This document shows positions 9,419-61,382 of a stretch of 64,000 nucleotides of DNA, piece after piece; within the stretch, counting starts at the first letter, position 1; the number at the start of each line of letters is the position of its first letter. The stretch covers positions 248,001-312,000 of the IMG/VR virus record IMGVR_UViG_3300037054_000148; one strand, written 5' to 3'. The position numbers were made by a program, and so were the translations under genes. The notes beneath the pieces were generated by a model. The model was not told where the DNA came from and ran no database searches. It was given only the letters and a program-made list of their open reading frames with translations.

Positions 9419-9859
9419 ATGCGACTCAACGCCAAGTTGCTGTGTAAAACAGCCGATGAAGACACAAAAGAAAAACTTATCGAAAAAGATAAAAATGAAG
9501 ATTATGGAATGGAGGCCATTTTTGACTTGCATAATATCCGTAGCGAGCTTATAACAGTTGAGAGAATTAGAAGGTTTGCTTCTGACCTGTGTGATAAAAT
9601 ATCTATGGAAAAAGGACCAGCGTTTACATGGGGGACAGACTCTAATAAAGACGAAATGAAGAACCCTAAAGCTATGGGGATATCCCACTTGCAGTTTGTA
9701 CATAGTTCCTCTATTACCATGCACTGTTTAGATAAAATAGGTAAAGTTTTTATAAATATTTTTAGTTGTAAATCTTTTGACGACAAAATTGCCCGAGATT
9801 TTGTAATTAAAACTTGGGGTGGTGATATTGTCTCTGAACATGTGATCACCAGAAAATGA
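9419..9859 (+). CDS. speD: S-adenosylmethionine decarboxylase-like (pyruvoyl-dependent) proenzyme with an N-terminal leader
   Basis: YG.E.IFDL.N ... GIS.LQF.HSSSITMH ... VFINIFSCK.FD (prokaryotic AdoMetDC layout with a self-cleavage Ser). Confidence 0.8.
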   Translation: MRLNAKLLCKTADEDTKEKLIEKDKNEDYGMEAIFDLHNIRSELITVERIRRFASDLCDKISMEKGPAFTWGTDSNKDEMKNPKAMGISHLQFVHSSSITMHCLDKIGKVFINIFSCKSFDDKIARDFVIKTWGGDIVSEHVITRK

Positions 9860-10551
9860 GTAAAGACCTACCTCATCCCACTTCTGGTGTTTATAGAATA
9901 ACTAACATTATAGATGGAAAGTTTTATATTGGGTCTTCTCAGAGTATACGAGTTAGATGGAATAGGCATAAACTTTACTTGGGAAGGGGGATTCACCCCA
10001 ACCGCTATTTACAGAATGCCTGGAATCTTTATGGGGGGAGTTCATTTGAATTCTGTGTTATTACTTATTGCGAAGTTTCTTTATTAAAAGACAAAGAACA
10101 GGAACTTTTAGACAAATATTGGGATAACTGTGAAAGTTGTTATAATATATCAAAAGATGCCACATGTCCAATGCGTGGGAGGCATTTAACTGAAGAACAA
10201 CTATATAGAATGCCATTAAGGTTAAAAGGGAGAAAACAGAGTGAGGAATGGGTAGCAAATAGTGCAAAATCTCGTAATGGTTTGAAGCGGTCTGCGGCTT
10301 TTTGTGAAGCTAACTCATTACGTCAAAAGGGAATGAAGCGGCCTACAAACCATTGCAATAGTATATCTAAAGCAACAACGGGCGAGAAAAACCCTAATGC
10401 AAAAGTTACAGAAGAAATTGTAACAAGTATAAGAACTGATTATAGATTGGGAATGACATATAATCAGTTAAAAAACAAATATGACACTACTTATACTATT
10501 GCTAGAAATATCTGTTTAAATATAACCTGGAGGGGGTCTGCACATGAATAA
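9856..10551 (+). CDS. free-standing GIY-YIG homing endonuclease with NUMOD-like DNA-binding repeats
   Basis: SGVYRITN..DGKFYIGSS..IR.RW..H...L....H.N..LQ.AW; GEKNPNAK..E helix-turn-helix tail; AT-rich. Confidence 0.9.
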   Translation: MSKDLPHPTSGVYRITNIIDGKFYIGSSQSIRVRWNRHKLYLGRGIHPNRYLQNAWNLYGGSSFEFCVITYCEVSLLKDKEQELLDKYWDNCESCYNISKDATCPMRGRHLTEEQLYRMPLRLKGRKQSEEWVANSAKSRNGLKRSAAFCEANSLRQKGMKRPTNHCNSISKATTGEKNPNAKVTEEIVTSIRTDYRLGMTYNQLKNKYDTTYTIARNICLNITWRGSAHE

Positions 10552-11554
10552 ACTAGTTGGTGCCGCTATTTTTCCAACTGGCATTGGACTGTCCATTGGA
10601 GGAGATGCTTCGGCTGGTGCAGTTATCCCATTACTTGCTTCTTGTTCGAAAAAGTTAATAGTCAATCCAAATGGAGTGAATGCGAGTGACTTAGTAGCCT
10701 GGGCTGACAACGTTCTCTATGTGGAAGGATCTACGATTGATCGCTTCCTTGAGGGCTCTATTAACCTTAAAGAATGCAGAACTTACAATAAGATTCTCTG
10801 TGTGGTAAATAAGCCGATGTCCATCGCATCTCAAAATGCTGTCAATGCGGCTCGTTGGACGTTGGGTGCGGATATCGAATTGCTGGAGCTTGACACTCCA
10901 CTGCGGATGACAGCATTTATCAATCCAGACGGAACGGCTGGGGGTAAACTCTCTGGCCATCACGAGTTAGTTAAGCAGATTAAGGATGCAAATATTGATT
11001 ATGATATCCTTACGGTGCATACTCCAATTGACTGTCCGGATGAAATCGCCAATGCTTACTGGCGACAAGAGATTCTGGTCAATCCCTGGGGTCGAGTCGA
11101 AGCCTTATTAAGTAAATTTCTTTCCTTCGCACTAGACAAACAGGCTGTCCACTCTCCAGTGGAGTTCTTGGCTGACCCACTCTTTAACAGAATTGCGGTG
11201 AAACCGTCCGAGGCCGCTGAAGTAATTTCGAATACGTTTGCTTGGTGTATGTTCAAGGGAACCCACCGAGCCCCGATGATAGACCCGGATCGTAATCCTC
11301 GTAACCTATCCAATCAGGACATGGATTTTCTCATTTCTCCCTCAGACTGTTGGGGCCGACCCCATGATGCCTGCCTTCAGAACCACATTCCCATTCTAAT
11401 CGTCAAAGAAAACACCACATGTTTCAAAGATTTCAAGTATCCGATGGTGGCTCTTGAAAGTTCCAGGGTAATCTTTGTTGAAAATTACCTTGAAGCGGCT
11501 GGGATGCTGATGGCTTGGAACGCTGGAATCGACCCACGGATCATCAGGGCTTGA
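10544..11554 (+). CDS. DUF3326-like protein
   Basis: IFPTGIG.SIGG.A...L....LIVNPN.VN.....LYVEG..ID.FL N-terminus. Confidence 0.7.
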   Translation: MNKLVGAAIFPTGIGLSIGGDASAGAVIPLLASCSKKLIVNPNGVNASDLVAWADNVLYVEGSTIDRFLEGSINLKECRTYNKILCVVNKPMSIASQNAVNAARWTLGADIELLELDTPLRMTAFINPDGTAGGKLSGHHELVKQIKDANIDYDILTVHTPIDCPDEIANAYWRQEILVNPWGRVEALLSKFLSFALDKQAVHSPVEFLADPLFNRIAVKPSEAAEVISNTFAWCMFKGTHRAPMIDPDRNPRNLSNQDMDFLISPSDCWGRPHDACLQNHIPILIVKENTTCFKDFKYPMVALESSRVIFVENYLEAAGMLMAWNAGIDPRIIRA

Positions 11555-11563
11555 AACTACCTG

Positions 11564-11592
11564 TAGACAAAGCTCCCTGATCTGGGTATTAT
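11564..11592 (+). promoter_or_regulatory. sigma70-type early promoter
   Basis: TAGACA-17 nt-TATTAT. Confidence 0.6.
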
Positions 11593-11609
11593 AAATCATG
11601 GAGGGACCG

Positions 11610-12217: not shown

Positions 12218-12231
12218 ATATCGGGTATACT
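12202..12231 (+). promoter_or_regulatory. putative early promoter
   Basis: TATACA-18 nt-TATACT. Confidence 0.45.
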
Positions 12232-12246
12232 AGTGTAGGGGGATTT

Positions 12247-15402: not shown

Positions 15403-16002
15403 ATGAAACGGATCAGAGCACACTTCTCAGCTAGGCTCCTGGCTGCCCCAATTGAAGGGGATTTGCCAATTGAGGATGAAGAGGATAAGCAGGAGTTCAG
15501 TGGCAAGGATACGAGCCTAACTCCGGCTCAAATGAAGAATAGTGTTCCGGCTTTATTCAACAAAATCCCTTGGCAATCTAGGATCCGAGTGTTTGACATC
15601 GGAGCAGGTAAACCATTGATGGCTGACGCACTTAAGCAGTGGTTCGAACTCAAGGACATCACCTACCTCCCCTATGACAAGTTCAATGGTGAGTCGTACA
15701 ACTTTGAAACTGTAAATCAGATTCGAAGGGGTAAGGCAGATGTGGCGACTGCTTCTAATCTACTCAATGTCATTGCTGAACCCAAGAGCCGTTTAACTGT
15801 CTACAAACAGATGTATAATGCACTTAAGGCTGGTGGAAAATTCTACATCTCTGTCTACTATGATCCAAATAGACGTCCAGGGCAATCCGGCAAGGACAAA
15901 TGGCAGAACCACATTCCCGCCAAAGCGTATCTCGAAGAGGTTCAGACCGTCTTCCCTGATGCTAGAATCCAGAACGGCCTGATCACCGGGACCAAGATCT
16001 GA
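15403..16002 (+). CDS. class I SAM-dependent methyltransferase with an N-terminal leader
   Basis: VFDIGAGK motif I; ASNLLNVI; ALKAGGKFYISVY. Confidence 0.8.
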   Translation: MKRIRAHFSARLLAAPIEGDLPIEDEEDKQEFSGKDTSLTPAQMKNSVPALFNKIPWQSRIRVFDIGAGKPLMADALKQWFELKDITYLPYDKFNGESYNFETVNQIRRGKADVATASNLLNVIAEPKSRLTVYKQMYNALKAGGKFYISVYYDPNRRPGQSGKDKWQNHIPAKAYLEEVQTVFPDARIQNGLITGTKI

Positions 16003-16034
16003 GTAATAATCCTTGAGGGGTCTCAGGGAGCAAC

Positions 16035-17067: not shown

Positions 17068-17736
17068 ATGAAATCACCCCTTTTTGAAAAGAGTAAAACT
17101 GCCATTCAAGTCGAATATGAATTTAGCACGACCCAAGCCATCTATGATGGAGCCACTACCAGAGATTTACTAGATTTTATACACAACACAATTCAGGATG
17201 AAGATGTGTATGTGGATGAAACGGATGGAATCAAAGGCAAGGAACGTAAGCCTCATATTACTCTGCTTTACGGAATCAGAGAACGCAAACCAGATATTCC
17301 GAAGTTAGAGCAGCTAATTCAGAACCACCCGGCTCTCAATCATGTAAATTGGATTGGGTTGAGTAAATTCGAATCTGTAAAGCATGATGTGTTAGTAATC
17401 CTAATCGAATCAGAAGAAGCTCAAGAACTTTTCACAGACCTAATGGCTATGTATCCGGATAATGCAAACAGTTTTCCAGATTATCAGCCTCACACCACCC
17501 TGGCTTACTTGAAGAAGGGAATGGCGGATAAGTATATTGAGAAGTTCTTTGACTCCTTTGTGGACTCTCCGGTTCCGATCAAGCACCTAGAATTTGAGAA
17601 TAATGGGGATATTGTGGTCTTCGACCCCAATTCAGCCCAGATGAAAAAGGTCATTACCGCTGCCGAGCTACTCACCAAGAAAAGAGCGGAACTGGAGCCC
17701 AAAACAGCTTACGAACGCTGGGTATCAGGTGATTAA
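17068..17736 (+). CDS. 2H phosphoesterase (LigT/T4 57B-Acb1-like fold) with an N-terminal leader
   Basis: Two HxT motifs: PHITLLYG and YQPHTTLAY. Confidence 0.85.
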   Translation: MKSPLFEKSKTAIQVEYEFSTTQAIYDGATTRDLLDFIHNTIQDEDVYVDETDGIKGKERKPHITLLYGIRERKPDIPKLEQLIQNHPALNHVNWIGLSKFESVKHDVLVILIESEEAQELFTDLMAMYPDNANSFPDYQPHTTLAYLKKGMADKYIEKFFDSFVDSPVPIKHLEFENNGDIVVFDPNSAQMKKVITAAELLTKKRAELEPKTAYERWVSGD

Positions 17737-21253: not shown

Positions 21254-21282
21254 ACGAGTAATAAGTAAAAGGAGTTTTACCT

Positions 21283-21552
21283 ATGCATATTGTCACTCTT
21301 CCGAATAAAGAACACTACGAGTATCTAATGTTTGTTTTTCACAAACACGCAGGATCTGGTCTCGATCCGGAAGAGTTGGCGATTGCGGGGCAAGTATGGA
21401 GCTTCCTGAAAAATTCCAGAGAAATTCTGCCCCCTGCCCAAGAAAAAGGTGAGCCGGAGACCATTCAGATTCCTGGGCCACTACAGATCGTCCACGAAGG
21501 GGACGTAAGTATGCCGTCCAATGAGGTGGGTCGTTCCGAGAGAGGGCAGTAA
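21283..21552 (+). CDS. hypothetical protein
   Basis: AAGGAG RBS. Confidence 0.6.
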   Translation: MHIVTLPNKEHYEYLMFVFHKHAGSGLDPEELAIAGQVWSFLKNSREILPPAQEKGEPETIQIPGPLQIVHEGDVSMPSNEVGRSERGQ

Positions 21553-21556
21553 CCCG

Positions 21557-22093
21557 CTAGCTTTTCCCCAGTTTTGCTAGAATCTCAGCCTTGTACTGAT
21601 GAATTCGTTTAACGTAATCAATGGTTTGCTGAGCATTTTTGTGTGTGATATTCGGTAAGGCTTGCTGCCAAGTCGTATTTCCACCAAGTTGCTCAGCTAA
21701 CCATACAGCTTTATCATAATTTCCAGGTCCAGCATTGTAGCTGGCCAAAGCTCCATCCCAAGTATTCGTTGGATCTATCCTGACAGCACCTTCTTCAAGA
21801 TATACCATGTAACGAGAGTTGGCACTGATGGACGCCTCGGGGTTCTTAGGGTCGGCCCCTTTTGGCTTCCCCCAGATTTTCCATGTGTCCATGGTGAATT
21901 GGGATAAGCCGAAGGCACAGGGGACTTTCTCCCCTTTCTTGTTGATGATAAAGGACTGGGCATTGGGGTTGAAATTAGACTCCGCCTTAATTTGGCTGGC
22001 CCTATCCACCCATCTGGCTCCGTCATACTGCACAAGCAAGCTCTGGTAAGGGACCACCAGAACCACACTGAAGCATAGATTGCGGAACCACAT
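21557..22093 (-). CDS. lytic transglycosylase, probable endolysin
   Basis: QIKAESNFNPNAQS, A.GLSQF...TW, ALASYNAGPGN. Confidence 0.9.
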   Translation of the reverse strand: MWFRNLCFSVVLVVPYQSLLVQYDGARWVDRASQIKAESNFNPNAQSFIINKKGEKVPCAFGLSQFTMDTWKIWGKPKGADPKNPEASISANSRYMVYLEEGAVRIDPTNTWDGALASYNAGPGNYDKAVWLAEQLGGNTTWQQALPNITHKNAQQTIDYVKRIHQYKAEILAKLGKS

Positions 22094-22102
22094 AAGGCCC
22101 CC

Positions 22103-22537
22103 TTATTTGAGCAAAGCCTGAATGAGGGAGTTCAAAATTGCACCAACCAGAGCGGCGAGGAGTATGCCTCCGTTGGAGATCTTTCGACTCTTTACCTCTT
22201 CAGAATCTTCTTCAATTGGCTCTAAATACTGCTTACCCAGGCGGGAGTTTTCTGCTATATTAAATAGCGTAGCGGCAGAGAGAAACCCCAGAGCGATAAC
22301 CGGAAGTGCCATCAGCAACCTCACTAAAGTGAGACGAGCACTAACTACTGCTTGCCACCATGCAGAGTCTGAAGTGACAGGAGTATGGGAAGCATAGGCA
22401 GCCAATGCGACAAAAAATGCTAGAAGACCGCAGGCTACCCAAATCAATATTTTGTTGATATGAGATCTACGCTGGGGATCGATTTTTGAACTGTCGGAGA
22501 ACAGATCTTTGATTAAACTTTTTGCCCACTTATTCAT
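22103..22537 (-). CDS. 3-TM membrane protein, holin candidate
   Basis: Three hydrophobic segments; directly upstream of the endolysin. Confidence 0.55.
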   Translation of the reverse strand: MNKWAKSLIKDLFSDSSKIDPQRRSHINKILIWVACGLLAFFVALAAYASHTPVTSDSAWWQAVVSARLTLVRLLMALPVIALGFLSAATLFNIAENSRLGKQYLEPIEEDSEEVKSRKISNGGILLAALVGAILNSLIQALLK

Positions 22538-22545
22538 TTGAGACT

Positions 22546-22568
22546 CCTCACCCTGGTATCAGAAAGTT
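22546..22568 (-). promoter_or_regulatory. putative late promoter motif
   Basis: AACTTT-N12-TGAGG before the lysis cassette. Confidence 0.5.
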
Positions 22569-23644: not shown

Positions 23645-23706
23645 GTGCGCTCCACATAAAAGGAATACAGAGTTCTTTCTTGAAGCTGATTTTTAAGGTG
23701 GCGTTC

Positions 23707-34348: not shown

Positions 34349-34386
34349 ACAAACGGATTTTCGACATCCTTAATAGAAGGCATCCG

Positions 34387-49704: not shown

Positions 49705-49728
49705 GACTATGGGTATCAATATTGAGAG
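49705..49728 (+). promoter_or_regulatory. putative late promoter motif
   Basis: GACTAT-N12-TGAGAG, 8 nt before ATG 49736. Confidence 0.45.
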
Positions 49729-49735
49729 TGTGAGC

Positions 49736-52700
49736 ATGAAGAGAGCATTTGTCCTACCTGAGCAGGGTGTCATTAATATCTATTTCATCCGAGATGAGCG
49801 GCCCCGAATCCAGTGGCTGATTGACTTGGGTATTCCTCGATTTTCAGTATTCATGCTAGAACTCCCTATCCCTTTGGACAACCCAGGACACACCCAGATT
49901 GTATTTCATGAAGGGACTGCACTTATCCTAGAACAAATCAAGGCTTTCTTATCCGAGACTGAGTTCGGAGAGGATGCGGGGGTCATCAAGGCGATGATGC
50001 AGGCTATCAAGCAGACCGAGATCGACTTCTACGGAACTGAATTGATGTACGGTTATGAAATCCTGTTCCCTTTGAGCCAGCAATTCTACGATCTAGTTCA
50101 TGAGCGAATTGTCAATCAGAAGACGGCCAGTGAAGACTCTGGTGCATGGAGCAGGCTTTATGATGATAACGTCAGTGATGAAGAGTTCTTAGAACGTCAT
50201 GCAGGACGGGAAGAGGGCATCTCCAAATCTGTTTGGAGAGCACCGGACACAAATAAGCGTATGATGGTGGACCTGGGCAAACCAGTGCAGAAACGAGATA
50301 AACAGGAATTAAATGACGCTCGTAAGATAATCGACCGCTACAAGCAGACCATCTACAAGAGCACCCCAGGCCCTTTGTTCGTCATCCTATACGACCGCAA
50401 TGGGCTTCCACGAGGCGTTAGTCGTGTAACCAATAAGGGACTGACCAAATGGGCCGATGGCTCTGAAGTACCTAGGGAACTTTTAACTGCATTGATTGAC
50501 ATCTTTGGGGAACAGGACGCCGATCAAGTCAAAGTGGCTGAAGAGAAGCCTAAAAATATCCCAAAGGATCTGCTCAAAAAACTTCCCGGCATTCACGAAA
50601 TATCACCAGAAGGTCAGGATGAAGGGGAGGGGGATAACAATTGGGAGGAGCCTAATGGCTACTCTCAGACCGTCAGGGATCGCTTAAAGCTCCTGAGAGA
50701 GCGAACCGGAATGGAGCTTCCAGTTTTAGGGGAAGGGTCTTCCCGTATGGTCGTCGGGGTAAATGAACATGTTGCAATCAAGCTAGCGATCAATCAGCCC
50801 GGTGTGGCTCAGAACAAAGCCGAACTCAGAATGTATGAGAAGGTTGAGGATTGCACTATTATCACTCGCATTTTTTACTATGATACTGAGTTTCACTGGC
50901 TCGTAGTTGAGCGAGTCCTAAGAGGGGCCACCTATTCAGATTTCGAACGATATGGAGCAACCGACGCCTACAACTTTTGTAAAAAAGTAGAGCGTGGGGG
51001 AACAGAATTTCTTACAGATAGGCAGGCAGTGAAATCTCTTCAGTTCTTATGCCAGACACTTGGTGTTAAATGGTGGGACATTGATCGAGAGAGCCAGTGG
51101 GGGCTGGTCGAACGTAGGGGTGAGCGGTATCCGGTCTTGGTAGACTACGGACTTGATGAAGAGGTGGCCCGACAACACTACAGCAGCAAACTTGCCGCAG
51201 GGTGGGGTAGTTTCATCAATGGTGAATACTGGGTAGATGGCGACTCAGCGAACAACTATGCAGAATGCAGTGGAGACGGGGACTATACCCACGAAACCTA
51301 TGCCAGAGAACAGATTCTCAATGACAAGTGGGACCAAATTCTTAGTGCTTGTCAGCGTCATCTTCAGGAGGCCCACGAAGAAGAAGATGACAACAACCCA
51401 GGAGAGGTGGAGGAAGAGTGGCGAAAGCTCCATGCGATGAAGTATGGGGAGCCTGACTTTCCAATGGAAGATGTGTTCTTTACCCTCATCTGGGGCTATG
51501 TTTCGTTAGAAGAGTGCGATGCCATCTTCAATGGTGAATACGACATGTTCAAGAATGAGGTTCGGGAATTCTTCATGCGATTCTACAACCAGATCCGGGT
51601 CGTGGACAAAAATTTCGAAGTGTGGAAACTCACCCCTCGAAACCTTGACACCATCATCGATTGGGTATTTAATGAGAGTGGGCTGGATGAATCCGACTTA
51701 GCTCAGATGAAGGATGAGGTTTATATTGAGCAATACGAAGGTGGCAGAAAATACGCAGGGATTCCAATTGGGGAGCTTCTAAACATGAAGAACCCAGGCG
51801 AAGTTTGGCGTTATCAAGGAATGACCGTGGCCTCGAAGCAGGCTGCGATGGTTGAACTTCCACACGATAAGGAAGTCAAGCTCCCCCTCTACATGCTGAA
51901 GAAACTCAAACAAATGGCCCAAAAGTTTGATCCCCAGGCTGACTTCCGCTTTGTCGGGGGCTGCGTACGTGATATGCTCCTGGACCGCAAACCAAAGGAT
52001 TTCGATGTCGTCACCAACACCACGGCTGACACTTTACAGAAGATGGGTTTGGAGAACGTGGGAAAGGCTTTTCCTGTCTACCTCTACCATGACCCCACGT
52101 ATGGCCAGATTGAAATCGCTGTGGCTCGTTCGGAAGAAAAGACTGGGGTGGGGCATAAGGACTTTGATATCGTTCCAACCGGCAATTTCGAAGGAGATAT
52201 GGTTCGCAGAGACCTGAATGTGAACGCCATGATGGTGGATGCGGATGGAAAACTCTTCGGCCCCACTGAAGCCCTACAGAACATCAAGGACAAGACCCTC
52301 CAGAATGTCAGTGAGAAGTTCGCTGAGGATGCGTTGCGCGTTTTCCGAGCCGCACGATTCAGTGCTCAGTTTGGGTCAGAGTGGAGGGTCAGTCCCCAAC
52401 TGGTGGACATGATGCACCGGATGCAACCTGAACTTCAATATCTTCCGGCTGATCGTATCAGGGAAGAAACTAAACGTGCGCTGGTCGGTAAAGTTCCCAT
52501 GCGCTTCTTTGAAGTGCTGCGTGAGGGGGGTTGCCTGGAACCCTGGTTCAGCGAGTTCGATCAAAACTGGAGTCAAATAGCTGAATCGGTCAACTACGGT
52601 CATCAGAATGGCTGGGATTTTGACTTGCAGATCGTTGGGATTGAATCACAGCTTCCCATTCCGGATAGCCTGAATAACCGGCTTGGTCTGTCGAATCAGA

Positions 52701-55700
52701 TCAAGCAGGCGGCTCAGTTTGTTAAAAAAAATAGGGGGAATATTAAACAAGCCAGGGCTCTTCCTAAAGAAACAGTAGTTGGGATCGTTCAAAGCGGGGT
52801 TAGAGGTGCGTTTGAGTTCGTGCAGCTACTGGACTGTGCGTTGCTCGGGACTAACCCAGACTCCAAGGACTTCTTACTCAAATGTGCGGAAGCCATCAAG
52901 GGCACCGATATGACAGGAGTGACAAGCCGCAATGAGGCTACAGAACGTTTGGTAGGGGCCATTTCAAAGGTCGGACACTCTAAGAGAGCTATGTCAGCAC
53001 AGCAGGCAGTAAATGAGGCTGTAAAATTGATCACTCAAGAAGAGATCAAGCAGCCCAAACCGTGGCAAACTCCGCAATTTAGAGCGTGGTTTGGAGACTC
53101 CAAAGTCGTAAATAAGGATGGAACCCCCAAGCGCGTCATGCATGGAACCACTCATGAATTCGATCAATTTTCCTTGCACAATGCATTTGAGGAAGGCTGG
53201 TATGGCAAGGGGTTTTATTTTACAGATTGTGAAAAGGATGTGGAGAACTACGCTTCCTTAGAGGGGCCAGATCTCACGGCCAGGATAGAGTTGGTCGCTG
53301 AGCGTCTAATGGATGACGGGGGCGACTGGGAAGAGAGCATGGGAGAGGAGCATGAGGACAACTCAAAGAGTATCCGTGAGTTAGCTCATCAAAAAGCTCA
53401 AGAAATGATTGCTGGGAAGCATCACGGGACAGTTTACCTCACCTATTTGAAGATGGAGAACCCTGTTATTGTTACCCCCAACGGAGGAACCTATCTTGGG
53501 GGGGACAGTGGATCTGACCCAGAGAACGAGGATGAATGGCTAGATGGCCCCGAAACCACCAAGCTATACGAGGCGATTCAGGCTGCTTGCTCACAGTTTG
53601 GCCTAAATGAGAAACGTATCTGGGATAGCCAACTATCTGATAGGCTGTTGGAAGGCTGCACAGCTTACGAGTTTGAAAAAGACTTACGGGAGAATGATGA
53701 AACTTTAGATGCAGAGGGGGGAGCGGGTCCAGTGATATCCGCCATCTATGAGGCTATGGGGTTTGATGGGATCATTATGGATGCTAAGGCTCAATTCGGA
53801 AATGGGAATACGGGGATGAAGATGTCTCCTAAGACCCGCCATTACATCGTATGGAACCCCCGTCAGGTTAAGTCGGCTATAGGGAACAAAGGGACGTTTG
53901 ACCCCTCCAGTCCCCTGCTAACGGCTGCGGTAAAGCCTAGAACGCAGGGTGGAGGATTGAACGTAGATCCTGTAGAACAGATAGTTGATGAGGAAACCCC
54001 AGAGAAAGAGAAGACCACCCCTCTGACTCAGGAGGAAGAGGATATGGCTAAGTCGCTGGCGGATAAGCGAATCAGCCCTGCGGCTCCAAGCAACGTGCTT
54101 AAGCCCGGTGCGATTGATCCGCATAGTCATGCCCAGAGTCAGCCCGACTTGAAAAAAATGATGGAGAACGAAAAGTTCGAGTTCAACGTCAACCTAGCGG
54201 TAGACAACTATCCTAACTTCAAATACATGCGAGAAGGTCGCTATAAGCAATTTGATGCTCATGAGAAGGCTGAGGAAATCATCAATCACATGGCTGCAAA
54301 TTTGATTTGGCTCTATAAGACCTGGGATAAGGCCCTGTCAGATAGAGCCAAACTCTGGTATGTAGGGGGTAACCGTATAATCCATCGGTGGGCTGATAAG
54401 TTCCATCTAGACCCGCATAAAGTGGCAGCAGTGATTGCCGCTCTATCCCCACAGGCACATTGGTTCCAGAATGTTACAACCGCAGAGCGTACCATCGAAG
54501 CCTTGGTAGAACTCAAAGACTTCCGCTGGGATTGGAAGATGGACCGTGTGGCCCTGCATCGTAACTGGACCCCTGAAGACTTGGAAGATGAGATGAAGGA
54601 ATCGGTCAAAGTCGGAGAGGCTGCGGAGAAGAAGAAAAACAAAAAGGAGAGTGCCAAGAAAGAGAAAGAGCCCAAGATCAAGTGGTCCGCAGCACTGGCT
54701 ATCCCCCTGCTTCGTGGCAAGACTCTGAATGAAGTAATGACCGAAAACAGTCCCGAATCAGGCCGAGAGTACTTAGCCTCTGTGTGGATCAGGGCCTGGG
54801 CCGAAGGGCACACAGATAACAAACTCCGTGAAGTCACCCCAGAGGGGAACTTTGGGGACTGGTTTAAGACTGGAAAGGCTGACGCCAAAGTCCGTTGGAC
54901 ATCCTTCGCTGCCATTACCAAAGCTGTCCGGATTTTAGAGTCTAACTCTGTCAACGATATCTCTAAATTGGTTGGGACTAACCACAAGGTTCGCTCATTC
55001 TATAACAATCTCATCGCCCCTATGGCGGATGAAGGGGATGTAACAATTGATACCCATGCAGTTGCTGCCGCTCTTATTCGTCCGCTGAGTGGAGCTTCTG
55101 TAGAGGTGGCTCATAACTTTGGCAGTGGGTTTACCCCCAAAAAGGATAAGAACGGCAAAATTTGGGTTTGGGATGAGGATGAGGGGGAGTATGTCGAGGG
55201 GGATCCTGATGCAGAAAAGATCCCAGGACCAAGCAACAGTTCAATCACCGGCCTCAACGGACTCTATGCTCTTTACGCTGAGGCATACCGTAGGGCCGCG
55301 AAAGATCCTGCGGTGGGGGTTCTACCCCGCGAACTCCAGTCGATCACCTGGGAGGCTGTGAGAGCCCTTTTCAACCCGGCTGACAAACGGGACAAGAAGT
55401 TCATACGTATGGCAAACGAGATCTGGGCCTCGCACGATCCAGAGGATGGAGGGCTCAATGCCGAACAAGCTAGGGAAAAAATCACCGCTGTTATCAAAGA
55501 ACGAAGAGGTGGAAAAGAAGTCTTCGAAACCCCAAGTTGGATCGGATCCGATCCTGAGATTCATGGAGACGCACAAGGTTCCTCTTACAAGAGAGGCTTA
55601 TCTGGGTCTGGCATACCCGGATCACAAGCCGGGGGCATTACTCCCACCGGAATTGGAGGCGGAGCTTCCCGAAGAACTTCGAGAAAAATAAACTCCCCAC

Positions 55701-56284
55701 TGCTGATGAAGATTGGAGCCCTGACGTTCAAACATGAGCACAGAGACTACCGATATGGACAGAACTACTTCGTCTTGTTTGCTTTTAACGGCAAGTTCTG
55801 TGTGGGTGAGATTCGCTACTCAGTTTATGAGGACGGCCCCTATATTGATAACATTGATGTAGGGAACCATGTTCTAACCAATCTAGAAACAAAAAAGCTC
55901 ATGTCAGAACGGTTGCGTAAGGCAACTGATCCAACAGAGTATGTGGGCCATGAGATGCTCAAGTATTTACAAAAACTCTATCCGGATAAAGACCTTGGGG
56001 TGAGACATGCCGATGCCGCTAAGGGGCTAGATTTTGATGAAATGGAAACTGAATATGCCCCTCTGATGGATGAAAAAGAGGCGCTGACTAAAGAGCAACA
56101 AAACATTGACCAAGCTCTAGAGGAAAACTCCAAAAGGAACGTAGCTTATCAAGACTGGGAGGATCATTATAAGAAACTCATGGATCGTTGGAATTGGATT
56201 GACGACAGGCTCTACGAGATTGAGCAGGCTCTGAACGTCTACCCCACTCCGGTAAGACAGAAACGTCTTATCAGAACAACATAA
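49736..56284 (+). CDS. giant polyvalent protein: kinase-like, CCA/poly(A)-polymerase-type nucleotidyltransferase, ADP-ribosyltransferase-like, HhH-glycosylase-like and GNAT-like domains
   Basis: LGEGSSR.V...AIK...AE (kinase); FVGGCVRD.LL...PKDFDV, RRD..VNAM, EDALR..RA.RF (CCA); FRAWFGDSKVV..DG.P...HGT, G.YFT, GFDGI (ART-PolyVal-type); VAAVIAALSPQ..W..N, KV.SFY.N, TID.HA (glycosylase-like). Confidence 0.85.
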   Translation: MKRAFVLPEQGVINIYFIRDERPRIQWLIDLGIPRFSVFMLELPIPLDNPGHTQIVFHEGTALILEQIKAFLSETEFGEDAGVIKAMMQAIKQTEIDFYGTELMYGYEILFPLSQQFYDLVHERIVNQKTASEDSGAWSRLYDDNVSDEEFLERHAGREEGISKSVWRAPDTNKRMMVDLGKPVQKRDKQELNDARKIIDRYKQTIYKSTPGPLFVILYDRNGLPRGVSRVTNKGLTKWADGSEVPRELLTALIDIFGEQDADQVKVAEEKPKNIPKDLLKKLPGIHEISPEGQDEGEGDNNWEEPNGYSQTVRDRLKLLRERTGMELPVLGEGSSRMVVGVNEHVAIKLAINQPGVAQNKAELRMYEKVEDCTIITRIFYYDTEFHWLVVERVLRGATYSDFERYGATDAYNFCKKVERGGTEFLTDRQAVKSLQFLCQTLGVKWWDIDRESQWGLVERRGERYPVLVDYGLDEEVARQHYSSKLAAGWGSFINGEYWVDGDSANNYAECSGDGDYTHETYAREQILNDKWDQILSACQRHLQEAHEEEDDNNPGEVEEEWRKLHAMKYGEPDFPMEDVFFTLIWGYVSLEECDAIFNGEYDMFKNEVREFFMRFYNQIRVVDKNFEVWKLTPRNLDTIIDWVFNESGLDESDLAQMKDEVYIEQYEGGRKYAGIPIGELLNMKNPGEVWRYQGMTVASKQAAMVELPHDKEVKLPLYMLKKLKQMAQKFDPQADFRFVGGCVRDMLLDRKPKDFDVVTNTTADTLQKMGLENVGKAFPVYLYHDPTYGQIEIAVARSEEKTGVGHKDFDIVPTGNFEGDMVRRDLNVNAMMVDADGKLFGPTEALQNIKDKTLQNVSEKFAEDALRVFRAARFSAQFGSEWRVSPQLVDMMHRMQPELQYLPADRIREETKRALVGKVPMRFFEVLREGGCLEPWFSEFDQNWSQIAESVNYGHQNGWDFDLQIVGIESQLPIPDSLNNRLGLSNQIKQAAQFVKKNRGNIKQARALPKETVVGIVQSGVRGAFEFVQLLDCALLGTNPDSKDFLLKCAEAIKGTDMTGVTSRNEATERLVGAISKVGHSKRAMSAQQAVNEAVKLITQEEIKQPKPWQTPQFRAWFGDSKVVNKDGTPKRVMHGTTHEFDQFSLHNAFEEGWYGKGFYFTDCEKDVENYASLEGPDLTARIELVAERLMDDGGDWEESMGEEHEDNSKSIRELAHQKAQEMIAGKHHGTVYLTYLKMENPVIVTPNGGTYLGGDSGSDPENEDEWLDGPETTKLYEAIQAACSQFGLNEKRIWDSQLSDRLLEGCTAYEFEKDLRENDETLDAEGGAGPVISAIYEAMGFDGIIMDAKAQFGNGNTGMKMSPKTRHYIVWNPRQVKSAIGNKGTFDPSSPLLTAAVKPRTQGGGLNVDPVEQIVDEETPEKEKTTPLTQEEEDMAKSLADKRISPAAPSNVLKPGAIDPHSHAQSQPDLKKMMENEKFEFNVNLAVDNYPNFKYMREGRYKQFDAHEKAEEIINHMAANLIWLYKTWDKALSDRAKLWYVGGNRIIHRWADKFHLDPHKVAAVIAALSPQAHWFQNVTTAERTIEALVELKDFRWDWKMDRVALHRNWTPEDLEDEMKESVKVGEAAEKKKNKKESAKKEKEPKIKWSAALAIPLLRGKTLNEVMTENSPESGREYLASVWIRAWAEGHTDNKLREVTPEGNFGDWFKTGKADAKVRWTSFAAITKAVRILESNSVNDISKLVGTNHKVRSFYNNLIAPMADEGDVTIDTHAVAAALIRPLSGASVEVAHNFGSGFTPKKDKNGKIWVWDEDEGEYVEGDPDAEKIPGPSNSSITGLNGLYALYAEAYRRAAKDPAVGVLPRELQSITWEAVRALFNPADKRDKKFIRMANEIWASHDPEDGGLNAEQAREKITAVIKERRGGKEVFETPSWIGSDPEIHGDAQGSSYKRGLSGSGIPGSQAGGITPTGIGGGASRRTSRKINSPLLMKIGALTFKHEHRDYRYGQNYFVLFAFNGKFCVGEIRYSVYEDGPYIDNIDVGNHVLTNLETKKLMSERLRKATDPTEYVGHEMLKYLQKLYPDKDLGVRHADAAKGLDFDEMETEYAPLMDEKEALTKEQQNIDQALEENSKRNVAYQDWEDHYKKLMDRWNWIDDRLYEIEQALNVYPTPVRQKRLIRTT

Positions 56285-56319: not shown

Positions 56320-59067
56320 ATGTCTGAAGTCATCACTCTTCTTGCCTCTCTGGCTTCTCCGTTGATCCGTAAAGAGGCTATCAGCGAGAGGAAAATTGAG
56401 TTTCTATCCGGACCCACCCGTTACGGCCCGAAGCTCTATCACTACGTAACCACCCATAATCTGGTCAATCTGATGGATGAAACTCTGGGTGAAGAAGCAG
56501 AACAGAAAGAGGCGAAAAAGCAAAATGAGCAGATGCTTAATGCAAAATACGCTCAGATTCTGACTCAAATTGCAGCGGCTGACCCCACGGACGGGATCAA
56601 CAAGAATGACTTTACTGAGTGGCTGTTGAAGGTCTGGTTGGCCATGGATGATGCGGCACGAGGTCACTGGGGTGAGGATACGGCAAATATCAAACAGAGC
56701 CTCACGGACTTTGTGGATCTTCGCAAGAGCCCGGAATGGAAAAAACAGGAGCTACCCACTGATTTGAATCGATTCTCTGATCTGGCAAATCTTAGAAGCA
56801 CCTTGACAAAATTTAACTCCGCCTCAGATATCTATACTCTTCCTGAGCTAAGCCCAGAAGGGGCAACGATCATCTACCAGGATAAGACATATATTTTGTG
56901 GCAAGTAACCAGTGCAAAAGATCTGACCGCTTTATCTCGCTTCCCTGAAAACAACCCACCCGCATGGTGTACCAACGATGAGGGCACTGCTGCACGTTAC
57001 CTTTCTTCTGGTCCGGACTATGTGGCTTATAAGAATGGAGACCCATTCTTTCAGCTTGACCCATCAGAAGATGAGCACCACGATAAATCCAAAGCTCAGT
57101 TTATGAGCCGCAACAATACACACATGTATGGGACTAAATTGATGAACCCAGAGTGTGCGGAACTGATTGAAAAAGCCCTCGCACATGGAAAAATGAATGA
57201 GAGGGCCAGAGAAGACCTAACTAAGACAATGGGATGTTACCAAGTTCCCAATTTAAATGACGCAGAGACCTTCTCCTACCTGCAAGAATACGTAATGGTT
57301 AATGGCGGAAATATAAAAAAGGATAAAAAGTTTCTGGATGCAGAAGAAAAATATGTTCGCCCCAGATATGAGCTTTTAGAGCCTGATGAGCTTCGGGAAC
57401 TGTGTAACCGTTATGCTCGTACCGGAGAGGCGGTCGCCCCTTACTATGAAGCCAACAAAAATGTGACTGAAATATCCAAGAAAATTGATAATACAAAATC
57501 TTACACTGATTTTGTAAAATCAATGAGCACTCCAGACACAGACCCTAACCATCTCACACCCGCAGAGTATGGGTTGGCTTTTAGAATTGACCCGTTGTTT
57601 AAGAAGGTATTCAACCTCTTCTCCAAAGAATACGATTGGGATGAGAAGTTTGCAAAATTCAGAGCGGCTGTCAAAGAAGGAAGCGAAAAAGCTGTGAACG
57701 AGGGGGAGGCCCTAGTTAACCTTCTGAATAGCAAGTTCCCCAGCAGCACTTACAGCTATGATAGAAGCGATGGAAATGTCACTGGGTTCACCATCCAACT
57801 AATGGGGGGGTATGGGGCTCATGGGATGCAGACCAAGGATTTCACTAGAAATATGGCGGTTCAACCTTATATCAAAATGATCAAGAACATGTTCCGGCCC
57901 TTTGTCAATCAGGCTTGGGAGAAAGCTGTTGAACAGGCTAAGGCAGAGCCAGATTACGGTGTTGCACACCAGCTGCTGAAGGATGCGGGGGACACATACA
58001 AGCGTAGAGTATCGGGAGATGGGGGGGCAGAGGAACGCGCACAGGCGGCTGTCAGACAAGCTCTGAAGGATATCGAAATCCCAGCTAGGGAGAAGCTGGA
58101 TGCAGCCTTAGCTGGGTTCACCAAGCTCAAGGAGGTGGCAACTTACGGACGAGAGAACTTCCTAAATGGTAGTCCCTTTAAGATCAGAAAAATTCCCTCT
58201 TGGGCACAGCCCTCCTTTGAGAAGAAGATCACAGAGATTGAGCTTCTTACTGAGAAAGCCATGGAGGACAAGCTCCAGAAAGTGGACAGAGGTGAAGTTA
58301 AGATTCGTACCACTCCAAAGCGTGAATATGAATTCTGGAAAGATAATCATCGGGATAAGGATCTTCCAGACCCAACGGACAAGGTGCTGGAGTGGGTCAT
58401 CAACTCTCCTTCGTTTGATGATAACAACATCATGGACGCACTGATTGAAATGAAGAACATCTCTGCGGTCGGTGAGGCTTGGATATTGCAGAAGGCACGT
58501 TATATCGGATCATGGAGACTAGACAAATACATGGAGAAGTTCCATCCAAAACGATGGCCGGAATTGGAAACGGCGTATCCGGCTATTCTCGATGATGATG
58601 ATTATGTCAATCGAGTATATGAAAAGAATGAGCGAATTCCTCGTCAGGAAGAGGCTATTCTGGCCGGAGTCGGACGAAGGAGAGGCGTCAGCAGTGCTAT
58701 TGCATACATCAAAGAACGAATGAACAGTAAGCCATGGCCTGAACTTGAAAAAGCGGTAGCGAAGGAGTTCAAGAGCCGAAAGTGGTCTGAGAGCTTCTAT
58801 GATGGTCCAGGAAATATAGCTGGGGAGATTCTTGAGTATATCGCTGAAATTAAAAAGAGTCGCTGGAAAGATATCGAAGAGAAAATGTTTGAGAACCAGG
58901 ATTGGGGATATAAATACCTCTTCCAGGTGTTGGGGGCTGATGAGGCTTCTAAACGTATCCGTAAGCTATTGGATGAAGAGAGTGAGACGCTTCCTAGGGG
59001 GGAGAAACAATCTCGACTCCATCAGGTTCTATTCGCCAAAGTAATATCCTATAAGGAGTCCGTATGA
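56320..59067 (+). CDS. large protein with an ADPT...WCT domain and C-terminal WPE helical repeats
   Basis: AADPT...FTEWL; AWCT....A..YL..GP.Y; RWPELE and PWPELE repeats. Confidence 0.8.
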   Translation: MSEVITLLASLASPLIRKEAISERKIEFLSGPTRYGPKLYHYVTTHNLVNLMDETLGEEAEQKEAKKQNEQMLNAKYAQILTQIAAADPTDGINKNDFTEWLLKVWLAMDDAARGHWGEDTANIKQSLTDFVDLRKSPEWKKQELPTDLNRFSDLANLRSTLTKFNSASDIYTLPELSPEGATIIYQDKTYILWQVTSAKDLTALSRFPENNPPAWCTNDEGTAARYLSSGPDYVAYKNGDPFFQLDPSEDEHHDKSKAQFMSRNNTHMYGTKLMNPECAELIEKALAHGKMNERAREDLTKTMGCYQVPNLNDAETFSYLQEYVMVNGGNIKKDKKFLDAEEKYVRPRYELLEPDELRELCNRYARTGEAVAPYYEANKNVTEISKKIDNTKSYTDFVKSMSTPDTDPNHLTPAEYGLAFRIDPLFKKVFNLFSKEYDWDEKFAKFRAAVKEGSEKAVNEGEALVNLLNSKFPSSTYSYDRSDGNVTGFTIQLMGGYGAHGMQTKDFTRNMAVQPYIKMIKNMFRPFVNQAWEKAVEQAKAEPDYGVAHQLLKDAGDTYKRRVSGDGGAEERAQAAVRQALKDIEIPAREKLDAALAGFTKLKEVATYGRENFLNGSPFKIRKIPSWAQPSFEKKITEIELLTEKAMEDKLQKVDRGEVKIRTTPKREYEFWKDNHRDKDLPDPTDKVLEWVINSPSFDDNNIMDALIEMKNISAVGEAWILQKARYIGSWRLDKYMEKFHPKRWPELETAYPAILDDDDYVNRVYEKNERIPRQEEAILAGVGRRRGVSSAIAYIKERMNSKPWPELEKAVAKEFKSRKWSESFYDGPGNIAGEILEYIAEIKKSRWKDIEEKMFENQDWGYKYLFQVLGADEASKRIRKLLDEESETLPRGEKQSRLHQVLFAKVISYKESV

Positions 59068-59651
59068 TAGGCAATGACAAAATGACTATTCCAGTAAAAG
59101 GTTATATTCGAGTATTCGAAGAGGCCAATCCGAAGAACATCATCTTCGAAGAGCATAATGTGATATGCCTGAATACGCAGTATCTGTTCGCTAGAATGAT
59201 GGCCAATATCGCAGATCCGGTCGCCGGGGTCTGGGGTCTTGCGATTGGGGCGGGTGCGCCAGACTGGCCACTCAACAATCAACCGGATGCGTTGCCCACC
59301 CAGCAGAACATCATCACTCCCATCCTTCGTAAGCCCTGCCGCTACATTCAGTTCGTGGATGTGAACCTGAATGTTATTCCGAGTGGGGGGTTCTCCAACA
59401 TAGTTGATTTCCAGACTATTCTGAACGCGACAACTGATAGCATCAATACCCCCATCAGAGAGCTAGGGCTCATCGGTGGAGGCAGCACTGCTTCGTCTAC
59501 AAACCTTCAGGTAGCCCCCTTCTTCAACAATGCCACTCAGTCTAGTATCAACGATACAAACACGGCCCTCCTGATCAATTACAAAACTCTCCCGCCCCTG
59601 GTGCTTCCAGCCGGAATCAATTTCATCATGAGTTGGGTCTTGACATTCTAA
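59064..59651 (+). CDS. baseplate/tail-fibre base protein
   Basis: G.WGLAIG.G...IRELGL.GG...LINYKT...W.LTF, a pattern typical of large myophage structural proteins. Confidence 0.65.
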   Translation: MIGNDKMTIPVKGYIRVFEEANPKNIIFEEHNVICLNTQYLFARMMANIADPVAGVWGLAIGAGAPDWPLNNQPDALPTQQNIITPILRKPCRYIQFVDVNLNVIPSGGFSNIVDFQTILNATTDSINTPIRELGLIGGGSTASSTNLQVAPFFNNATQSSINDTNTALLINYKTLPPLVLPAGINFIMSWVLTF

Positions 59652-59660
59652 GAGGCCCAA

Positions 59661-61382
59661 ATGCCATCTTCATTATTAACCAGACAAGCCATTCTGATTG
59701 ACGCAGCCGCTTCAGCAAATAGACAGCAGGCCCTATTGGATAAGTATCCCGTGGACCGAGCGGAGGTGGAGCAACTTGCGAATGTTGACCCTACTCCTAA
59801 TGGCACCTACACGGAGTTCCTTGTCAGAGAATTCACGAAGAGGCGGTTTGGTCTCAATCGGATGGCTCTGGATGAAGCACATGATGCGTTGGTTAAATTC
59901 AATCGACTGAAGAACTCACAAGAGTTTCGAAATATGCCCAATACCCATACGGATATTTTGGCCTATGATTACCACACATTCTTAGCCCAAATGGCAGAAG
60001 CAGGACGGGCACAGCTATCAAAAAATGAGCAAGAACGAGAACTAAAGCGCAGAAGGCAGAAATATTTAGACGAGGGCTGTGAGTTGTTGACCGAGCAAAG
60101 AGGGTATGCCTTCTTCAAAGTCACCACTCCAGAGGCGGCAGTCCTGATGGGCCAGGGCTCTCACTGGTGTACAAAAGATGAGGCTACCGCACGTAATTAT
60201 TTGCGCCGTGGGCCACTCTATGTGATAACTCAAGAAACTGAGGGGGGAAATTACGGATCAGACCGTTACGCTCAGTTCTCTATTCCCAGTAGTGCCTATG
60301 ATATTGCTGCATTCGAATGTCAAGATGTGGACGGAAATGACTTCGGGAGTAAGGAGGCTGGGGATCGCTGTTACTACTTTAGTAATAAAGACTATTGGTG
60401 GCTTGTGGAAGTGCTAGAAAACTATGATGAAGTCCTGACCTTCTGGGTAAAAGAGGGATACGTTTTTAATGATTATGATAATATGCGCTATCTCGAACAA
60501 TGCTCAGAGTGCGGAAAATATGTGGATGAGAACTCAGAAGATTTATATTATACAGATGATGGGACTTTCTGCTGTAGAAGCTGCTTCTTAGCTCATTACG
60601 AAAACAAAATTGAAGAAGAAGTGCATCGTCTGTATCACCCAGACTTAGAAGAGCATGACAAAATTGCAGCGGAAATAGAATTTTACATCAATAGCCCTGA
60701 ATCCCCAGAGCATAAATACTTTGCTCTAGTGGATCAAGCCAAGCAGGTTGAATACCCAGATACCGAAAAATGGGGGTTTGCCACCCAACTTTCTAATGCA
60801 AGGGGCTGTGCTACCGTCTCGCAAGAGAAAATCGATAAGATGATACCGGGCGTTAGAAAAGAAGACGGAGAGCGAGTTTACAAGCATTTGAAGGGGCTGA
60901 TGGACCAGCTTAAGGATGAGGATGACTTGATTGAGGCAGCCTTTGACTATGTGAAAGAAGAGTTTGCTCCGGAAAATATGGATGTGGCTGAAATTTTACG
61001 CGAGGGGGGCTACATAGACACCCAGCCTAAAAATAGCTCTCTGTTGAAGAAAGCTCGTAAAAACATTGGGGCCACCCTCACGGAAGAGCCAGAACAGGCC
61101 GATATTCTCACCAATTACCCAGTCCCTCAAGATATTAAAACCGCATCTCTAGCCTTAAAATCTGAATTTGAAAATTACAAACAAGGACGAAAAGGGACAC
61201 TGGAAAACGGACTTGTTGACTCTTTTTTGAAGGGGTCTGAAGTCTGGAAAAAGTTAGCGACTGCTCTTAACTCTCAAAACAGACGACTTGTCTTACAGGA
61301 ACTAAGCCGCGAGGGAATCCAAAGAGGACATGCCAATGTCAGACACAGTTCGCAAATGGGTGATGGAGATCCAAGACGATGA
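59661..61382 (+). CDS. ADPT...WCT-domain protein with a zinc finger (paralogue of 56320-59067)
   Basis: NVDPT...YTEFL; HWCT..E.TA..YL..GPLY; CSECG...CC.SC. Confidence 0.8.
   Translation: MPSSLLTRQAILIDAAASANRQQALLDKYPVDRAEVEQLANVDPTPNGTYTEFLVREFTKRRFGLNRMALDEAHDALVKFNRLKNSQEFRNMPNTHTDILAYDYHTFLAQMAEAGRAQLSKNEQERELKRRRQKYLDEGCELLTEQRGYAFFKVTTPEAAVLMGQGSHWCTKDEATARNYLRRGPLYVITQETEGGNYGSDRYAQFSIPSSAYDIAAFECQDVDGNDFGSKEAGDRCYYFSNKDYWWLVEVLENYDEVLTFWVKEGYVFNDYDNMRYLEQCSECGKYVDENSEDLYYTDDGTFCCRSCFLAHYENKIEEEVHRLYHPDLEEHDKIAAEIEFYINSPESPEHKYFALVDQAKQVEYPDTEKWGFATQLSNARGCATVSQEKIDKMIPGVRKEDGERVYKHLKGLMDQLKDEDDLIEAAFDYVKEEFAPENMDVAEILREGGYIDTQPKNSSLLKKARKNIGATLTEEPEQADILTNYPVPQDIKTASLALKSEFENYKQGRKGTLENGLVDSFLKGSEVWKKLATALNSQNRRLVLQELSREGIQRGHANVRHSSQMGDGDPRR

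Follow-up and report, generated by a model that had tools for sequence, protein, structure and literature searches.

To our knowledge, only two prohead-protease specificities with cargo-targeting propeptides have been well mapped, that of T4 (L/I-x-E) and that of phiKZ/SPN3US (S/A/G-x-E), and both proteases cut after Glu. In T4, the capsid targeting sequence (CTS; M-K-T-Y-Q-E-F-I-A-E) is a short N-terminal peptide that sits on unrelated proteins (IPI-III and the ADP-ribosyltransferase Alt) and ends in the motif cut by the protease gp21. In the jumbo myoviruses phiKZ, 201phi2-1 and SPN3US, many head and ejection proteins are processed at S/A/G-x-E (AXE) by gp175 or gp245, at several redundant propeptide sites, and most propeptides span 100–250 aa. 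Herpesvirus assemblin cuts its maturational sites, (V/L/I)-x-A↓S, after Ala. Phage P1 packages DarB, DdrB and other proteins of its Dar antirestriction system in the head, which needs Hdf, DarA and an ordered assembly pathway. Polyvalent proteins are a family predicted to be packaged, injected and possibly processed, by autoproteolysis in the published model (Iyer et al. 2017, PMC5512222). Here we describe a candidate code of this kind in a jumbo phage, starting from a 64,000-nt stretch (the window; bases 248001–312000 of the 313,597-bp IMG/VR virus record IMGVR_UViG_3300037054_000148, which is rated complete). An initial annotation of the window had read a leader and linker motif on several enzymes as a capsid-targeting signal cut after K-x-A. 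We find that K-x-A is the most over-represented residue pair in the head-module proteins of this phage, where the head protease probably cuts at it, and that a short N-terminal leader recurs on unrelated proteins of a relative.

The sole named relative of this phage is Tunturiibacter phage Tunturi 5, a 309-kb myovirus with an Acidobacteriota host; about 89 genes are common to the two at 25–66% protein identity. For comparison we fetched two further genomes of the clade, G1 (332 kb) and G3 (221 kb), together with 80 head-module loci and 48 distant loci of the gp222 type (named after a Tunturi 5 virion protein).

All 400 residue pairs at gaps 0–3 were scanned, comparing observed with expected counts. 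Among the 26 head-module proteins of the window's genome K-x-A ranked first (103 against 50.2 expected, z 7.4; next pair z 3.6), and in the other 292 proteins it was found 294 times against 283 expected. R-x-A and T-x-A were not enriched in the head-module proteins. The head region of Tunturi 5, as defined by its published annotation, showed the same excess (133 against 83, z 5.5; 327 against 316 in the rest), as did that of G3 (106 against 59, z 6.2; 261 against 258 in the rest). K-x-A is thus the leading pair of the head module in three related genomes and close to expectation elsewhere. As a positive control, the scan was run on T4 gp67, gp68, gp21 and gp22, where the top pairs were I-x-E and L-x-E, the known gp21 cleavage sites (PMC9026906); neighbouring T4 proteins were at expectation. 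The MCP (major capsid protein) N-terminus was considered as additional evidence and set aside as uninformative, because it is conserved throughout, LLKTA included, and so cannot discriminate.

The proteins with the largest [KR]-x-A excess over composition are the protease, its neighbour, the portal, the scaffold, a DarB-like protein and the protein in the 'ejection protein' slot, and the highest K-x-A excess in each genome falls on the protease, the scaffold and the gp328-, gp348- and DarB-like proteins. No other protein has a K-x-A excess as large as that of the DarB-like protein (genome 138121–140856; 16 against 4.6). Its place in the head module parallels the P1 Dar system, where, unlike here, the proteins are not known to share a short leader. 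Position P1', which follows the Ala, is enriched in A and S (2.2–2.4-fold), and the K and A within K-x-A are more strongly conserved from ortholog to ortholog than K and A at other places (P 0.01 and 0.003).

An excess of this kind could come from Lys/Ala-rich histone-like DNA-binding or coiled-coil segments instead of a protease site. Many of the sites do lie in K/A/S/P-rich stretches (KPASKAAS, KKAAAGG), and slight excesses are seen for K..A (z 3.0, window's genome) and for A.K (z 3.1, Tunturi 5). However, the excess is directional and confined to one spacing, with KA and A.K outside the top pairs of the window's genome against z 7.4 for K.A, and the raised K..S of the Tunturi 5 head region (z 5.2) is what K-x-A-S would be expected to give. 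Moreover, the same method recovers the true T4 cleavage motif, and the conserved K-x-A of the protease, a globular protein, is confined to its termini, as shown below. We therefore consider a compositional origin very unlikely.

The candidate protease was located through synteny, since the protease/scaffold/MCP region follows the order of Tunturi 5 gp329–gp334 (MCP, phrog_2522, E 3.6e-41):

Genome 122.9–123.8 kb, outside the window: prohead protease, PHROG 'head maturation protease' (phrog_18299, E 1.4e-18)

Searches of the genome for Pfam Peptidase_S77 and S78 gave no match, and the family (717 homologs) is without a Pfam model. In a 30-sequence alignment, the only near-invariant columns in the variable termini are K4/A6, K31/A33, K37/A39 and A262/S263 of K-A-A-S, so that the terminal extensions hold exactly four conserved islands (F-K-K-x-A-x-A, F-G-H-K-T-A-S, x-K-I-A and x-K-A-A-S). 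T4 gp21 and SPN3US gp245 process their own termini. The best VIA-align match of the modelled core (residues 38–221; the Tunturi 5 protease row was left out of the structure prediction) is T4 gp21 (Z 6.7, well ahead of the others), with the proteases of Kaposi's sarcoma-associated herpesvirus (KSHV) and human cytomegalovirus (HCMV) next at Z ~4. As in T4, then, a protease of like fold is encoded beside the scaffold and major capsid protein genes, with its putative motif over-represented in core proteins and present near its own termini; the predicted P1 residue is Ala here and Glu in T4. Like the phiKZ-type phages, this one is a jumbo myovirus with many candidate processed head and ejection proteins, several redundant sites and a protease that would process its own terminus. 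They are, however, an unrelated clade: the present phage has genes in common only with Tunturi 5-like phages, its protease has no S77/S78 match, and P1 would be Ala instead of Glu. With herpesvirus assemblin it would have in common the fold and a P1 Ala followed by Ser or Ala; the difference is at P3, Lys here and an aliphatic residue there.

The second element is the leader, a peptide of the form [SA]-[KRSP]-L-L-x(0-2)-[KR]-x-A. It recurs in Tunturi 5, a genome that had played no part in the initial annotation, on the following proteins:

Tunturi 5 gp205: ADP-ribosyltransferase (ART) toxin, N-terminus MSRSKLLTRRA
Tunturi 5 gp273: 1489-aa NUDIX polyvalent protein, N-terminus MAKSRLLKKA
Tunturi 5 gp220: protein in the position equivalent to the window's 573-aa protein, N-terminus MSKSKLLIRIA
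Tunturi 5 gp195: N-terminus MRAKLLRRRA

These are 4 matches among 598 start-proximal Met, at residues 3–5, against 0 among 1390 internal Met (P 0.008). With the ART toxin, the carriers include an ADP-ribosyltransferase, as Alt is in T4. Applied to G1, G3 and the 48 distant loci, a weight matrix trained on the window's genome and Tunturi 5 reached an odds ratio of 4.4 (P 4e-4; the data include some double counting). Proteins adjoining the head protease keep [AS]SLL.[KR] while the remainder is only ~30% identical, and this protease-adjacent module begins a separate protein in other contigs (MHSKLLQRKA or M..SPLLKKA) and is internal in G1, where SSLLKKKA lies within a 1650-aa fusion. This bears out the earlier proposal that one peptide serves both as leader and as linker. 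The distant loci have, in the 573-aa/gp220 position, a gene whose product starts with MNPLLQRKAE, MANHPLLQKRAS, MNPLFQKKTN or MANLLKKTAV, that is, with N-P-L-L or H-P-L-L variants.

In the window itself, five proteins were proposed to carry the leader. Three are enzymes:

9419–9859 (+): S-adenosylmethionine decarboxylase (AdoMetDC), 146 aa, Pfam AdoMet_dc at residues 34–145 (E 2e-8)
15403–16002 (+): methyltransferase, 199 aa, Methyltransf_23 (E 1.6e-4, below the curated cut-off)
17068–17736 (+): 2H phosphoesterase, Acb1-like, 222 aa, 2_5_RNA_ligase2 (E 1e-7) and Acb1 (E 3e-7)

The other two are the 922-aa and 573-aa proteins of a downstream cluster. All quoted peptides are present where they had been placed, and the start codons are credible, each having an AGG/GGAG-like ribosome site 6–13 nt upstream. 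Leucine codons vary between leaders, which indicates selection on the peptide and not on the DNA. The AdoMetDC leader, MRLNAKLLCKTA (nt 9419–9454), is followed by an acidic spacer, and the catalytic fold starts at about residue 30. Relatives at 50–61% identity retain AKLLCKTAD, ARLLCKQAD or EKLLAKSPD with the acidic spacer, homologs at 31–40% identity begin directly at the catalytic domain, and residues 1–11 of an AlphaFold2 (AF2) model (predicted local distance difference test, pLDDT, 84.7) score below 50. The leader is thus modelled as a disordered add-on, absent from distant homologs. For the 2H protein, the leader MKSPLFEKSKTA (nt 17068–17103) immediately precedes the 2H domain, and in the G3 ortholog FFARLLTKQAA stands directly before the same domain after a 100-aa N-terminal extension. 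(A RelE-like identity for this extension was dropped, as it had no Pfam support.) The methyltransferase N-terminus, MKRIRAHFSARLLAA, has its leader at nt 15427–15447 without K-x-A; FSA[RK]LL is kept in two relatives (37–53% identity) and missing from others, so this protein is a weak case as a tagged protein. Its family is seen mostly inside very large proteins of metagenomes (up to 5097 aa), many of its 1236 homologs being domains of 1000–5000-aa proteins, and by sequence the small methyltransferase is a free-standing copy of a polyvalent-protein module.

How much of this pattern in the window could be chance and common descent? On that view the motif would be a loose one drawn up after the fact, fitted to N-termini with much K, S, L and A and to linkers with much Ala, Lys and Ser, with two paralogs and one conserved domain end in addition. 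The initial composite pattern, while made of real strings, proves too permissive as written: [KRT]-x-A occurs every ~80 residues, and in the range of the original finding it was observed 213 times against 207 expected, so NQKTA, SSKLAA, ASKQAA and HSKRA carry no weight as motif matches. The full form, [SA][PSKR]L[LFI]x(0-6)[KRT]xA, was found five times in the first 35 residues against 0.62 expected under a position-specific permutation null; this test is circular, since 4/5 matches are the initial annotation's own examples. Outside the window the same form occurs once against 0.49 expected, and a looser form ending in A seven times against 2.6 (P 0.015). K-x-A in the first 25 residues is enriched genome-wide in G3 only. 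The strict pattern is non-significant in G1 and in G3 individually and in the 80 head-module loci, and has no match in the 48 distant loci. The carriers had also been called otherwise unrelated, which holds for AdoMetDC, the 2H protein and the methyltransferase; it fails for the 922-aa and 573-aa proteins, paralogs with a common ~180-aa domain, and for SSPLLTAA, which is a homologous module end (below). On the other side stand the four near-identical Tunturi 5 leaders on unrelated proteins, the cross-genome weight-matrix test, the retention of the leader in orthologs whose remainder is ~30% identical, the invariant islands in variable linkers, and a head-module K-x-A excess (z 7.4) that is independent of the first selection. 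Taken together, we judge it improbable that the window's items are mostly chance and descent.

A different objection grants that K-x-A is the head-protease motif and holds that the S-x-L-L leader on the enzymes is unrelated to packaging. ClpX-type N-terminal degrons are polar, small, basic and hydrophobic signals that give ClpXP-dependent turnover, and the leader presumably resembles those of Dps and lambda O. It could be such a degron, a signal for the phage's own HslV-like peptidase, or a helix that, by binding a partner or a membrane, sets the time or place of early anti-defence enzymes in the cell. AdoMetDC, methyltransferases and 2H/Acb1-like proteins are of kinds that other phages produce early and in the cytoplasm; their genes here lie among small genes away from the head module, some leaders are without K-x-A, and the phage encodes an HslV-family peptidase homolog (genome 27269–27826, matching Tunturi 5 gp106). 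Yet the S-S-L-L-K-K-A form is also found in protease-adjacent proteins and head-module fusions, internal copies of the leader are unable to act as N-degrons, and the leader is also on an ART toxin and a polyvalent protein, whose analogs T4 Alt and P1 Dar are packaged (PMC5512222). A role unrelated to packaging seems to us unlikely.

The initial annotation had further placed most carriers behind a late-like promoter, which we did not recover: k-mer enrichment gave GAGTA[AT]TA only, and inspection of the upstream regions of structural genes by eye yielded no consensus. The octamer lies 13–50 nt upstream of more than 40 genes, with upstream regions enriched 5–8-fold, and probably serves the phage as a promoter element; none of the leader-bearing genes has a copy upstream. 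Its copies in the window are at 2697–2704, 16002–16009, 21257–21264 and 59040–59047, with about 40 more elsewhere in the genome, and its genes are mainly those of replication or nucleotide metabolism, with the gp222-like virion gene at 59064 included.

Downstream of the tail genes, the window encodes a large protein and a cluster that is conserved in G1, G3 and Tunturi 5:

23.6–49.7 kb: tail-fibre and baseplate genes (He_PIG, Hint, Baseplate_J)
49709–56284 (+): polyvalent protein, 2191 aa, recognised by Pfam, PHROG and mosaic homology blocks
56320–59067 (+): 915-aa protein (922 aa from TTG 56299), with a ribosome-binding site supporting ATG 56320
59064–59651 (+): 195-aa conserved protein, homolog of the Tunturi 5 gp222 'virion structural protein' (41–55% identity in Tunturi 5, G1 and G3)
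59661–61382 (+): 573-aa protein, with leader MPSSLLTRQA (nt 59661–59690) and domain X

The 2191-aa protein lies directly downstream of baseplate genes and upstream of the gp222-like virion protein. Its modules are, in order, an N-terminal module shared with Tunturi 5 gp224, a phrog_4301 region, a nucleotidyltransferase, ART-PolyVal, DUF7178 and an uncharacterised C-terminus. Pfam identifies PolyA_pol (CCA-adding/poly(A) polymerase-type) with an RNA-binding domain at residues 747–951, ART-PolyVal at 1135–1211 and DUF7178 at 1518–1605. Different blocks match different phages, making the protein a mosaic, and a megablast search of phage records with the gene found no close DNA-level relatives. 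Six internal peptides had been placed at domain boundaries, and all six lie near module ends as defined by the homology blocks:

Residues 136–140 (nt 50114–50128): NQKTA, at the end of the gp224-like block (140)
Residues 492–497 (nt 51182–51199): SSKLAA, where a block in common with G3 begins (494)
Residues 708–713 (nt 51830–51847): ASKQAA, at the end of the G3-shared block (712)
Residues 1090–1094 (nt 52976–52990): HSKRA, between the nucleotidyltransferase and ART modules (1092)
Residues 1400–1407 (nt 53906–53929): SSPLLTAA, at the ART module end (1407)
Residues 1995–2004 (nt 55691–55720): NSPLLMKIGA, after DUF7178 (1996)

Three of the six, at block ends, are conserved as K-x-A in the 35%-identical G3 protein, with the caveat that alignment ends tend to land on matched residues. 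SSPLLTAA aligns with the conserved end (…QVKSAIGN.G.FD….[IL]-T-A-[AGS]) of four ART-PolyVal modules from three genomes. The K-x-A count of the whole protein is not significantly raised (17 against 11.7 expected), and most of the sites are inside domains. Cutting of the 2191-aa protein at K-x-A junctions is possible but unproven. The initial annotation had described it as a polyprotein of injected effectors: a multi-domain polyvalent protein it is, joining nucleotidyltransferase, ART-PolyVal and DUF7178 beside baseplate and virion genes, and the injected-effector idea is the already published polyvalent-protein hypothesis (PMC5512222). What differs is the processing. A Pfam search of the 2191-aa protein detected no embedded peptidase (MPTase or similar), a domain frequent but not obligatory in the family, and the proposed agent is the head protease acting at K-x-A junctions, whereas the published model is autoproteolysis.

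The first 140 residues of the 2191-aa protein match the C-terminal part (residues 479–616) of Tunturi 5 gp224 (36336–38402 (-)), whose own N-terminus is leader-like (MTVRASLL). Although annotated 'portal protein', gp224 is probably not the portal and likely mis-annotated, because gp7, another Tunturi 5 portal, matches the portal of the window's phage at 53% identity. We also considered the 922-aa protein as a portal, which could not be demonstrated; BLASTP against gp224 gave no match. Outside the window (genome 102076–102828) lies a gene for a stand-alone SprT-like zinc metallopeptidase (E 1e-6), homologous to residues 124–262 of gp321, a polyvalent protein of Tunturi 5; the preceding gene encodes a protein of 140 aa that carries the leader MFKFSAKLLTADA. 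By homology, what is a single polyvalent protein in Tunturi 5 (gp321) corresponds to separate genes in the window's phage.

Turning to the cluster, the start of the 922-aa open reading frame is most likely ATG 56320; the leader-like SPLIRKEA lies at nt 56356–56379, and domain X begins at about residue 88. Domain X (~180 aa; AAAS.AKK.AL..KY…DPTPNGEYTEWL) is what the 922-aa and 573-aa proteins have in common, and BLASTP with either hits the same G1 and G3 proteins. It is present in three copies in one 1562-aa G3 protein (G3 21352–26040) and embedded in G1 polyvalent proteins, and may be the common anchor of a cargo-like gene cluster. Pfam and PHROG searches with both proteins gave no match, and the ESM Atlas returned viral hypothetical clusters and a weak PcfJ lead only. 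The internal SSLLKKA of the 573-aa protein (nt 61035–61055; S459–A465) is invariant in five sequences of 60–67% identity while its flanks diverge, and across the family SSLLKK(x)A is constant within a variable linker. The 195-aa protein has 51 related loci in IMG/VR and anchors the gene cluster across the clade. Directly beyond the cluster, on the opposite strand, lies a gene for an HNH homing-type endonuclease (61559–62146 (-)), and equivalent clusters in related contigs are interrupted by NUMOD3 and GIY-YIG-like genes.

Among the tail genes, an 841-aa protein (39544–42069 (+)) has a Hint/intein-like domain at its C-terminal end (residues 691–837; AXH E 6e-12, Hint E 9e-10, PT-HINT E 1e-5); this points to a tail component whose C-terminus is autoproteolytic or presents a toxin. 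In the pair scan, the top signals of the non-head proteins were TG, G.T, G..G and T..T (z 13–18), and these result from short Gly/Thr periodic repeats in giant tail-fibre proteins (27548–39534 (+) and other fibre genes).

The reading we favour combines these elements into one scheme. A prohead protease with the T4 gp21/herpesvirus assemblin fold would recognise Lys-x-Ala and cut, most likely after the Ala, with Ala, Ser or Gly next. Its substrates would be the head-core and internal proteins with many sites, namely the scaffold, the protease itself, the portal N-terminus, the protease-adjacent small protein, the protein in the 'ejection protein' slot and the DarB-like protein. A short and extended form of the motif, S/A-x-L-L-x(0-2)-K/R-x-A, stands at the extreme N-terminus of a few otherwise unrelated proteins, in a disordered tail with an acidic spacer after it; by analogy with the T4 CTS, its S-x-L-L half would serve to dock the carrier onto the assembling core, and the protease would take the tag off at K-x-A. 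In the window, the tagged proteins would be AdoMetDC, the 2H/Acb1-like phosphoesterase, the 922-aa and 573-aa paralogs and, less convincingly, the methyltransferase, and the 2191-aa polyvalent protein may be trimmed at its K-x-A junctions. What the analysis shows is the motif statistics with their replication and positive control, the conservation, the add-on character of the leader, and the identity and fold of the protease; the cleavage, targeting and polyvalent-protein cutting, and the packaging and injection of AdoMetDC, methyltransferase and 2H protein, we infer. The capsid-targeting and cleavage signal put forward by the initial annotation in this way gains strong, though indirect, support from the head-module K-x-A, the T4 control, the protease termini and the Tunturi 5 leaders.

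Several observations weigh against this scheme. In the window's own genome the leader is enriched only modestly, by a test that is partly circular, and the strict expression fails in G1 and G3 taken singly and in the distant loci. The leaders of AdoMetDC, the 2H protein and the 922-aa protein end in K-x-A, whereas those of the 573-aa protein and three from Tunturi 5 end in R-x-A, which is not enriched in head proteins, and that of the methyltransferase in A-A. The window's cargo candidates are without a K-x-A excess, and AdoMetDC, methyltransferase and 2H protein are located among small genes with no late promoter definable. The G1 head region reaches only z 2.9 for K-x-A. Finally, the protease model is of low confidence (pLDDT 62), and Foldseek alone gave no significant match for its fold (E 0.08). 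Weighing both sides, we see about an even chance that this is a clade-specific head-maturation code, combining targeting and processing like those of the T4 CTS with a herpesvirus-like K-x-A↓A/S specificity. A further step is more tentative, and we hold it rather doubtful: that in a largely uncultured soil jumbo-phage clade a transferable 8–12-residue tag loads a changing enzyme cargo for injection, with the protease (Ala↓Ser) removing the tag and splitting polyvalent proteins. The cargo would then include, with the same doubt, the Acb1-like phosphoesterase, the SAM (S-adenosylmethionine) decarboxylase, methyltransferases, ART toxins, and NUDIX and nucleotidyltransferase polyvalent proteins.

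Our literature search found no paper describing a K-x-A head code or its leader. The logic itself matches that of T4 and of phiKZ/SPN3US, and what is new is the K-x-A motif with Ala instead of Glu at P1, the clade, and the kinds of tag carriers. As with the T4 CTS, a short N-terminal peptide on unrelated proteins ends in the protease motif, which here is a putative one and not present in all of them; the sequence is S-x-L-L…K-x-A, metabolic and anti-defence enzymes are among the carriers, as are giant polyvalent proteins, and the system is a prediction from sequence. The leaders, at 8–12 aa, are also far shorter than most phiKZ-type propeptides. If the scheme is correct, it would add a third code, with a P1 Ala, in a clade with metagenomic members in the hundreds and with Tunturi 5, grown on Tunturiibacter psychrotolerans, as its one cultured isolate, and would link phage and herpesvirus protease specificities. 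It would also allow packaged and injected proteins, including enzymes acting against CBASS (the cyclic oligonucleotide-based antiphage signaling system), to be predicted from sequence only, and would provide a short peptide with which foreign proteins could be loaded into large capsids. The polyvalent-protein hypothesis, in turn, would gain a concrete and testable processing mechanism.

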